Part shown: one piece after another, positions 39,801 to 42,800 of the stretch | How positions within the stretch are numbered: the stretch's first letter is position 1 | Layout: each line of letters begins with the position of its first letter | DNA from: Bugula neritina | Taxonomy: Eukaryota > Animalia > Bryozoa | Length of the DNA stretch: 64,000 bases | Direction: 5' to 3' | Assembly: GCA_964035545.1 (NCBI GenBank) | Contig: OZ037769.1 | Span: forward strand, 6,801,929 to 6,865,928 | Made by a program: the position numbers and the translations under genes | The notes under the pieces: model-generated | What the model saw: the letters and a program-made list of their open reading frames with translations, nothing else | The model's database searches: none | Told to the model about the DNA's origin: nothing

Positions 39801-42800
39801 CTGAGTGCCACAATTGTTAGGTTTTTTAGGATGAGGATGACAGCACGATATTGGTTCAACAGATTCTACTCAGTTATGGGTCTAAGAGCTGACAACACTA
39901 GATCTGCTGGCACATTCAGTTGAGAATGGTGAGTTCTAGAGTATAAACATGTACTACTTGCTATCTGAATGAGTCCTAAATAAACAATGCTCACACCATC
40001 CTGGCGACAGAACACAACTCCTGGGAAGAGTAATGTTATCATATGCATGACTTATTTCTTGAGATCAAAACATTAATCGGAGGCACAGAAAGTCAATTAT
40101 TATAGGATTTGACACTTGAACAAATTTGATAAAAACAGGTAACTCCCACAACAGAATGGAAGAGCTTATGTGATATACAAGCCGTAAATTGACAGCTTAT
40201 AATTTTGTAGTAAATGATCCCTTGCTTTTGAAAACTGTTAACGTCTATGATATTTGAATCAAAATTGGCAATGTTTTAGAATTAATGTAATCCCTGGCTC
40301 AAGAGATCAAGATGATTTCACCCAAGCAACTAAGATTTATCATAATGGTAACTACAGTGTTGGCATTCGTGAATGAACACAATGACAATAAAATAGGCAC
40401 AACTTTGGTAAACCATATTAAAAAGCGAGTGTATGCCGATGATTGTAGAAGTTACATGACCTGTTCTGAAGAATGGAATCACAGGAAAATTAAGCATAAC
40501 TCATCTGTTCCTTACAAAATTGTAGCTCGAAATTATTCAAGAGTAGACATTGAAATGTATGCTGAATTTTTCTTCTCCTACGCTATATTTGGTATTCTGT
40601 CAATAGTTTCTTTGATACATGTGGCTAATCACTCGTCCCAGTGTAAAAATTTAGTAGTTAAAATGCTGAATCCAAAAAAACATTCTCACAAAGTAAGAAA
40701 GTCTAAATTCAGGCCAAGAGCAGATTTATTTTCACTAGCACATTACAGGCCAAGAGAAACGAGCTTTTGGGTCTACACTGTACCGAGATACCCTGAAAAC
40801 CACAACCCTCTACTACCTTTGAGTTTACAGCAACTACTAGACGACATGAGCCCAAAAGAATTTCTAACTTACGTACTCAAAGAGCTTACATTAGAAGAGA
40901 GAGAATCTCTGATGGTGGATGAAAAACAAAGGCGAAAAACATTTCTAGTTAACTGGCCATATAACGACCAAAGGTCTGGTGTAAAGATGGCACAAGCAGG
41001 ATTCTATTCACTAAATGATTATGACAGAGTTCAGTGTGTCTTCTGCAGAGGTAGTTTACATAAATGGGATTCTTCTGAGACACCTATGGCTGAACATGCA
41101 AAGTCTTTCACATTTTGTAGATTTGTGAAAGGACTAGAATGCGGAAATAGAGAATACCGCTCAACCAACCTGCTTCCTGAAGAGATGAAAAACATAACAA
41201 AATTCACAAATGAGGCTAAGAATTCAGCGGTCAGATCATTAAGAATCACAAATGACAGTAATTCATTTGGTATATGCACAAATCGAGCAGCAACTATTCG
41301 CTATGCACCAGCAGCTTCAAGGCTAAAGACGTATGCAAAATGGCCAGCACATTGTCCAATCACAGCTCAAAGAATGTGTGAGGCTGGTTTTTATTTTACA
41401 GGATTTGAAGATCAAGTGCGCTGCTTCTTTTGTGCGGGAGGGATTAAACAGTGGTGTGAAAATGATGATCCTTGGGAAGAACATGCCAGATGGTTTCCAG
41501 ACTGCGCTTTCCTGATCCAACAGAAAGGTCAAGGATATGTTGAGGAGATACATGCTAAAACTCCAGCTAACAAGAAAAGTGTGAGAAAAACACAGGCACA
41601 GAAAAAGGAAGAATTGAATAAAACAGGAACTTTAAATAATCAAAAGGAAATGTTTACTTTGTGTCTAAGACTGGGTCATGATCATGAATTAGTATTAAGG
41701 GCATTTACAGTGCATGAACAGCCATTTGCAGATATAAAAGAGCTTGTTGATTTACTGTATACACTAGAAGATGGAGGTAAAATTCCTACATCTTCTCCCT
41801 CCCCAATACTGGCAACATCAAACAATTTTAAAGCAACTTGTCCAGATGAAGAGCAACAGCTAGCCCGGCAGCAACAATTAAAAACCTCTGAACTAGGAAT
41901 GTTTGATGGTAGTGAGAATGGTAGACAATACCCACTCGGTTGTGTGCTATGTGAAAGAAAAACTGCTTCTTTTGTGCCTGCAATGTATGTATCTCTCCCC
42001 TGTGGCCATCTAATTTTTTGTGAAAATTGCAAAAATGAAGAAGAGAGACTGTCTTCTAACCCTAAGCACAAAGTGATATGTCCACTGAAAACATGCCAGA
42101 CACAATTGACTGGTGCAATAAAAACCATCATTGCTTAATTACCATTTATAAATGTTGAAGTGTTGTAAAACTAAACCTTTTTGAGCCTTTCAACTTAATA
42201 TCCAGAATCCAAGTTATCAGTAAATTTAACATGTTAGGCCAACAGGTAAAATAATGTCATTTATACAAAAAAGAGCATTGCATGCACAGTATCTCCATGT
42301 GCAAATTTTCAAATTGCCAGAGTATACACTCATAACCTCGCTGCATGATTTATATCATCAAAGACTTCAGCAAAATTATGATTTAATTTAACAGACTTTT
42401 CAAGTAGTAAAAACTTTTGAATAATTTCTGTTTTTTAATCAGCTTACAGTGAGAAGATTAACACATATTTCAGCACCTTTAAATATTGTAGGTAAGTTGT
42501 GAATCCTGTTTCTGAAAGCGACACACTTATGAGAGCCTAACTTTAGGCATAAACACAATACAAGTTTTTTACACACCGATAACATACCAATATTATTTAT
42601 TATCCCTATTTCTTATATCTATACAATAATTTCTACTATACAAGTTTTGCTAAATCTTTTAGCCTAAATACTTTTGTATTTGGCATAAAATGCTTCAGCT
42701 AACTAACAAATGATAAAATTGTAAGTTATTTAGTGACAGCAGTGCATAACAGCAAATAAAGTGAAAGTAAAGAATGCCATTCAAACTTTTAGCTATGTAA

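Follow-up and report, generated by a model that had tools for sequence, protein, structure and literature searches.

IAPs are described as soluble proteins that are taken to membranes by adaptors, and the BIR1 of cIAPs binds TRAF2. Membrane-bound RING ligases form a separate group, in which RNF43/ZNRF3 and GRAIL are type I proteins. Of the 37 human TM-RING genes listed in PMC4971459, none is a BIRC or IAP gene. Three IAP surveys (PMC7831173, PMC8917759 and PMC13159474) do not use the words 'transmembrane', 'membrane' or 'signal peptide' in their main texts, and bryozoans were absent from both of those that were also checked for them. The 2026 survey distinguished 121 architectures on the basis of InterProScan and HMM domains, and its main text flagged single GPCR and SRCR cases as possible artefacts. 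Signal-peptide-bearing IAPs of Ca. Endonucleobacter are cited in PMC12491435. No described membrane-anchored IAP was found in the literature searched, which lay mostly outside subscription journals.

The window analysed here is a stretch of 64,000 nucleotides from the Bugula neritina genome (216 Mb). It contains six IAP ORFs, all on the + strand. The ORF of copy 6 (40312-42138, + strand) is open and encodes 608 aa in a single coding exon. Its closest database match was 'IAP1' of Bugula neritina (93% identical, leader included), and the next named matches came from Watersipora subatra. Copy 6 is an IAP by its BIRs, and it is neither a three-BIR cIAP/XIAP nor a PA-TM-RING ligase. An earlier note on this DNA had described it as a candidate receptor-like, membrane-anchored IAP. 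The membrane anchor is probable, and the receptor role is so far unsupported. In our preferred reading, copy 6 is probably a member of a bryozoan IAP clade that combines a BIR2-BIR3-UBA-like-RING core with a paralog-specific anchoring leader.

Copy 6 is the sole IAP inside an intron of a PMCA (plasma-membrane Ca2+-ATPase) gene, to which it lies antisense. PMCA-like frames at 37890-38225 and 43408-43620, recognised by Pfam, place the host intron at approximately 38226-43407 on the - strand. The same nesting was found in a second Bugula genome (assembly GCA_010799875.2). Further intronless copies were located on C5 and C7; relatives with introns lie on C6 and C3. Such a tandem cluster with intronless coding sequences, with intron-containing relatives on other chromosomes, resembles the IAP families of bivalves and other animals, which are expanded and in part intronless. 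The intron-containing clade members are clustered at 12.48-12.60 Mb of C6.

Two BIRs passed the Pfam threshold (128.9 bits vs a cut-off of 22.9). BIR-a (40930-41127, + strand; C242, C245, H262, C269) is closest to BIR2 of three-BIR IAPs, and BIR-b (41320-41514, + strand; C371, C374, H391, C398) is closest to BIR3. Both show the IAP (BIRC) spacing CxxC-x16-H-x6-C, with ligands invariant in 31 sequences. BIR-b superposed on cIAP1 BIR3 with Z 16.6 and an rmsd of 0.9 A over 87 residues, and also on DIAP1 BIR2. BIR-a and BIR-b matched BIR2 and BIR3 best in 6/7 three-BIR IAPs, which indicates that BIR1 is the absent one; a BIR1 of the TRAF2- or TAB1-binding type was not found in the ORF, which has two BIRs only. 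The UBA-like three-helix region (41641-41772, + strand; approximately aa 444-487) was recognised by hhalign against lophotrochozoan IAP UBAs (93.9%, E 1.6e-7); profile comparison is its sole support, and Pfam UBA gave no match in the ORF. The C-terminal IAP-type RING with the stop codon (41941-42138, + strand) has two insertions and an atypical tail. It scored 19.2 bits (E 0.001) in Pfam against a cut-off of 27, and all eight C3HC4 ligand positions were readable. The RING matched at E<=1 in 26/31 family members (best 3.8e-10), and its closest PDB sequences were the RINGs of cIAP and XIAP (E 0.16-0.3). The tail of copy 6 carries Ile, vs Phe or Tyr in most relatives. This atypical RING makes the E3 ligase activity of copy 6 uncertain, and it may be a poor ligase. 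The BIRs, the UBA-like region and the RING were all confident in the alignment-based model. Of the BIR-BIR-UBA-RING core that had been proposed, the BIRs stand by Pfam and the UBA by profile comparison, and the RING falls below the Pfam cut-off.

Copy 6 has two zinc-binding BIRs, a UBA-like region and a C-terminal RING in common with the DIAP1-type two-BIR RING IAPs and with the BIR2-BIR3-UBA-RING part of XIAP, cIAP1/2 and mollusc XIAP-like proteins. It differs from the DIAP1, XIAP and cIAP types in having no BIR1 or CARD, in its hydrophobic leader and pre-BIR module, and in a RING whose tail is changed and which carries insertions. The family-specific pre-BIR module (40750-40920, + strand; aa 147-203, containing M179) was delimited by alignment, profile search and model. 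It contains the motif YTVPRYP and then three short helices, and its dN/dS is ~0.1. Among the collected sequences, the pre-BIR profile selected 42 proteins; the named ones are all from Bugula or Watersipora, and the remainder come from unlabelled environmental contigs.

The transcript evidence consisted of assembled contigs from four runs taken to be RNA (X1, X3, X4 and X8). These contigs span ~39.8-42.46 kb, with next to nothing outside. The 5′ non-coding exon (39824-39928, + strand, start approximate) is followed by a 5′ UTR intron of 351 nt with GT-AG ends (39929-40279, + strand). Contigs of X1, X3 and X8, which come from three studies, end this exon at 39928 and join it to exon 2 at 40280, 32 nt 5′ of ATG 40312. 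A single X3 contig of 2091 nt covers 40295-42408, from the leader through the 3′ UTR (42139-42461, + strand, end approximate), where the contig cover stops at 42461 in three runs. The intron was retained in some contigs of X3 and X4. Since the GT-AG ends sit on the + strand, the transcript is not the pre-mRNA of the host gene. These transcript-type contigs contain the leader and ATG 40312, as the reading of the earlier note requires. The possibility that the leader is a 5′ UTR spliced into the core was ruled out, because the sole GT-AG joint falls at 40280; no splice into the core was seen in contigs from the four runs. One low-depth X8 contig has an additional T at 40566, which reflects an error or else a broken allele.

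For the reading of upstream ATGs, the exons were joined in silico across the 5′ junction. An upstream ORF of 30 codons (39831-39923) lies within the 5′ exon, and the ATG at 39926-39928 reads Met-Asn-stop once spliced, a 2-codon ORF. An in-frame start-stop element, ATG TAA (40285-40290, + strand; ATG TAG in the second genome), excludes a longer N-terminus. The candidate start codons are M1, M12, M49, M82 and M118, of which M118 alone omits the predicted membrane helix. The upstream ATGs could shift initiation to M118, beyond the helix. The 35 codons 5′ of M179 are conserved family-wide, which indicates that translation starts further upstream than M179.

An open leader of 142 codons has a chance of 2e-5 per frame, and 0/3294 non-coding runs reached 146 codons. 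The open leader is not a chance product. In the second genome, ATG 40312 and the reading frame were kept, and the annotator there had placed the start at M12. The earlier note had expected an orthologous leader free of stops, and the whole leader was open in that genome. Codons 1-142 differed between the two genomes at 10/426 bases (2.3%) with no indels, vs 35/348 bases (10.1%) in the 5′ UTR intron (p 8e-6). The 3′ UTR diverged by 9.4% and the host introns by 7-8%. Five of the leader substitutions are silent and five are replacements (dN/dS 0.26, p 0.038). No base change fell in the helix codons and no amino-acid change in aa 106-142; no part of the leader is less constrained than the predicted outer segment (ectodomain). 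The leader of paralog c3 gave a dN/dS of 0.37 (p 0.024), and the leaders of a Watersipora paralog pair gave 0.8, which was not significant. The 5′ exon (3.8%) is about as conserved as the leader, so low divergence alone is no proof of coding, and some of the leader constraint may act at the RNA level. The substitution pattern indirectly shows that the leader is under coding constraint.

The leader begins with a marginal candidate signal peptide (40312-40365, + strand; aa 1-18), which would be lost if translation started at M12. It has two basic residues and an uncharged 9-mer with KD 2.72, and its V-x-A site falls at 18/19; the crude rule that it passed was also passed by 14% of non-coding Met starts. 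The predicted luminal or extracellular segment (40366-40566, + strand; aa 19-85) contains C45, C51 and the sequons N63 and N74, all at the places that had been described. Only 12 residues separate N74 from the helix, and the predicted cytosolic side holds a third sequon, N106. The predicted transmembrane helix (40567-40626, + strand; aa 86-105) was likewise present as described and was helical in the model. Its charge is -1 before and +2 after, a C minus N difference of +3, in a sequence-level test of a single helix. The polar basic linker (40627-40749, + strand; aa 106-146) is predicted to be cytosolic and disordered from the sequence and the model. A basic stretch had been placed directly after the helix; it exists, but it begins 17 residues downstream (aa 122-136).

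The hydrophobicity of the helix is only moderate (Kyte-Doolittle 19-mer 2.09, simple Hessa-scale sum +0.71), and it exceeded its own shuffles with p 0.02. Of the stop-free non-coding 146-mers from this AT-rich DNA, 57% reached KD 1.6 and 20% reached 2.09. The helix on its own is weak evidence, unremarkable for AT-rich sequence. These frequencies favour the explanation that copy 6 is a soluble IAP with an incidental leader, in which each copy recruited local AT-rich DNA as an N-terminal extension and the protein is not inserted or starts at M118. The leader is also unique in the genome: an origin by copying from another gene or repeat was rejected, as neither protein nor DNA searches gave a second genome match. 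In the protein database, nothing beyond the ortholog matched the leader. The several upstream ATGs and the family members that have no helix (P0008, P0015) fit this explanation too. We consider it unlikely. Against it, codons 1-117 are open in two genomes, the helix has kept every base, and the family leaders differ from non-coding translations: FILVM makes up 29% of the leaders vs 36% of non-coding translations and acidity is doubled in the leaders, yet their hydrophobic residues are clustered. Some family leaders, moreover, reach 300-380 aa and have signal-like starts.

The family of leaders carries most of the argument for a membrane anchor. A helix was scored as a hydrophobic 19-mer with KD >=1.45 followed by a polar linker. 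This layout was found in 14/20 leaders, vs 7.5% of non-coding stretches, and in a mean of 1/20 (maximum 5) shuffled leaders. Ten of the 20 leaders beat their own shuffles at p<0.05, vs 8.7% in the null. The charge after minus before the helix was positive in 11 leaders, zero in five and negative in four. A signal-like start, helix and linker occurred jointly in 7/23 leaders, copy 6 having this combination, vs 0.7% of non-coding Met starts. These family figures overstate the certainty, because the thresholds were set after the sequences had been viewed and because the leaders are in part dependent on one another. The leaders are mostly unalignable even where the cores are near-identical, as in c1 and c3; the relationships of the cores were taken from a quick-version tree. 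The family leaders had no matches in Pfam or Atlas. We regard the family pattern as strong evidence for the predicted anchor. Of the type I membrane E3 ligase with cytosolic BIR and RING domains that the earlier note proposed, the anchor is supported by the charge bias and the family pattern; topology, signal cleavage and glycosylation of the copy 6 protein are predicted.

The 'receptor-like' and 'glycosylated ectodomain' parts of the proposal are unsupported. The ectodomain gave no Pfam, Atlas or fold match and had no homolog except the ortholog, and the alignment-based model gave a pLDDT <50 for aa 41-82. A folded ligand-binding ectodomain of the PA-TM-RING or receptor type is absent by these measures. 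It has no conserved feature and shows the lowest constraint within the leader, and other family members have no ectodomain or unrelated ones. Aa 106-144 were also not confident in the model, and single-sequence folding of the ORF gave a pLDDT of 32. The structure matches of the leader were generic helices (Z up to 6.4), and Atlas searches returned blank or generic matches.

Could the family be true receptor-ligases, whose variable ectodomains sense microbes or colony self/non-self and whose clustering switches the cytosolic RING? Several members have a type I-like layout with outer segments of up to ~270 aa, and unrelated leaders stand on near-identical cores. Diversified immune receptor families likewise combine variable parts with near-identical cores, and Lingula IAPs with N-terminal CARD-NACHT or HEPN modules point the same way. 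Nevertheless, the outer segment is almost nil in many members (c3, P0018), that of copy 6 has only ~65 aa with low model confidence, the ectodomains have no Pfam or Atlas match, and positive selection was not found. We therefore consider sensing of this kind quite improbable for these proteins. The wider proposal built on it, in which bryozoans have single-pass receptor-ligases with interchangeable, unrelated ectodomains on an IAP core, so that contact with microbes or neighbouring colonies would set adaptor-free caspase or innate-immune ubiquitin signalling, appears equally doubtful. For the short outer segment, the most likely role is that of an address or a spacer rather than of a ligand-binding domain.

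Copy 6 is probably an IAP tethered to a membrane, with its BIR and RING domains in the cytosol, and its leader would act as an address label and anchor replacing adaptor recruitment. The spliced transcript bears ATG 40312 and the entire ORF, and the leader is, by indirect evidence, under coding constraint. The N-terminus would then be inserted into the ER membrane in an N-out, C-in orientation; a start at M1 would give a type I protein, and a start at M12 or M82 a signal anchor. By analogy with IAP biochemistry, the cytosolic BIR-b would bind partners that expose an IAP-binding motif, for example processed caspases or antagonists, and the UBA and RING would handle ubiquitin. The anchor would take over the job of BIR1 and of adaptors such as TRAF2 in cIAPs, so that each paralog would be fixed to a membrane compartment. 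If true, a BIR1-less clade with its own anchor would represent another way to localise IAP activity, and the predicted fixing of an IAP to a membrane by its leader has no described counterpart in the literature searched. The near-identical cores with different leaders would form a natural set for testing location vs substrate choice.

The linker and the pre-BIR motif also bear on a different role of the membrane, in which the anchored protein is an idle precursor and its core is set free by proteolysis of the basic linker, with the conserved xVP/xVA motif ahead of the BIRs as a possible internal mimic of the IAP-binding motif. The linker is disordered and basic, and the pre-BIR motif is TVPR in copy 6 and AVPR, AVAR or AIPR in paralogs, which may resemble the AVPx IAP-binding motif. 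The motif has a pLDDT <50 in the model, though, and a conserved cleavage site was not found in the linker. A released precursor is very unlikely, and stable tethering by the leader remains the reading that we prefer.

As a tethered IAP, copy 6 would share a predicted anchor and a cytosolic RING with TM-RING E3s such as RNF43/ZNRF3, the GRAIL/RNF128 group, RNF26, CGRRF1, MUL1 and BFAR. The TM-RING E3s have no BIR, and copy 6 has no PA or other folded ectodomain. The IAPs of Endozoicomonadaceae (P0070, P0121) likewise have a hydrophobic N-terminus before the BIRs and RING, but they are bacterial and have no second helix near the BIRs and no pre-BIR module. BIR-RING proteins with signal-like starts were P0070, P0121 and P0103; the first two belong to Endozoicomonas and Ca. 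Endonucleobacter and are of a known kind. In two abalone (Haliotis) XIAP-like proteins and one ascidian (Phallusia) IAP (P0082, P0199 and P0049), BIR1 is preceded at a distance of 32-76 residues by a TM-like helix. The layout may therefore not be bryozoan-only, and domain-based IAP surveys perhaps miss membrane anchors.

Several other sequences were noted in these searches. P0092, which falls in one cluster with a Lingula protein, and P0084 are IAPs with N-terminal CARD-NACHT or HEPN_DZIP3 modules. A PPG-x-x-hydrophobic-Y-x-x-P stretch, reminiscent of the pre-BIR motif of the bryozoan proteins, is present in several IAPs with long leaders. P0048 ('Transmembrane protein') was rejected as a relative of the leader, as its match is to the core; it is a multi-exon model with a predicted N-terminal part. 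In the Logan contig L042 (256-1986), a signal-peptide-bearing leader is in frame with an IAP and is split by a TAG.

The other copies of the window differ in their 5′ parts. Copy 1 (window 1-1421) has its own leader just 5′ of the window (L002:1009-1596). The start of this leader is more clearly signal-peptide-like than that of copy 6, and a TGA at 105-107 separates it from the core. Copy 2 has tracts at 5874-6030 and 6163-6426 that are 99% and 90% identical to 40977-41133 and 41341-41604 of copy 6, which suggests gene conversion or a chimera. Copy 5 (22028-22230, L038) combines a short leader with three BIRs. In the second assembly, this leader carries a one-base frameshift and BIR-b of copy 6 a compensated one, both of which may be assembly errors. 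A tandem repeat with a unit of ~52 nt occupies 28868-29760 of the window, and a reverse-transcriptase fragment lies at 52755-53654 on the - strand.
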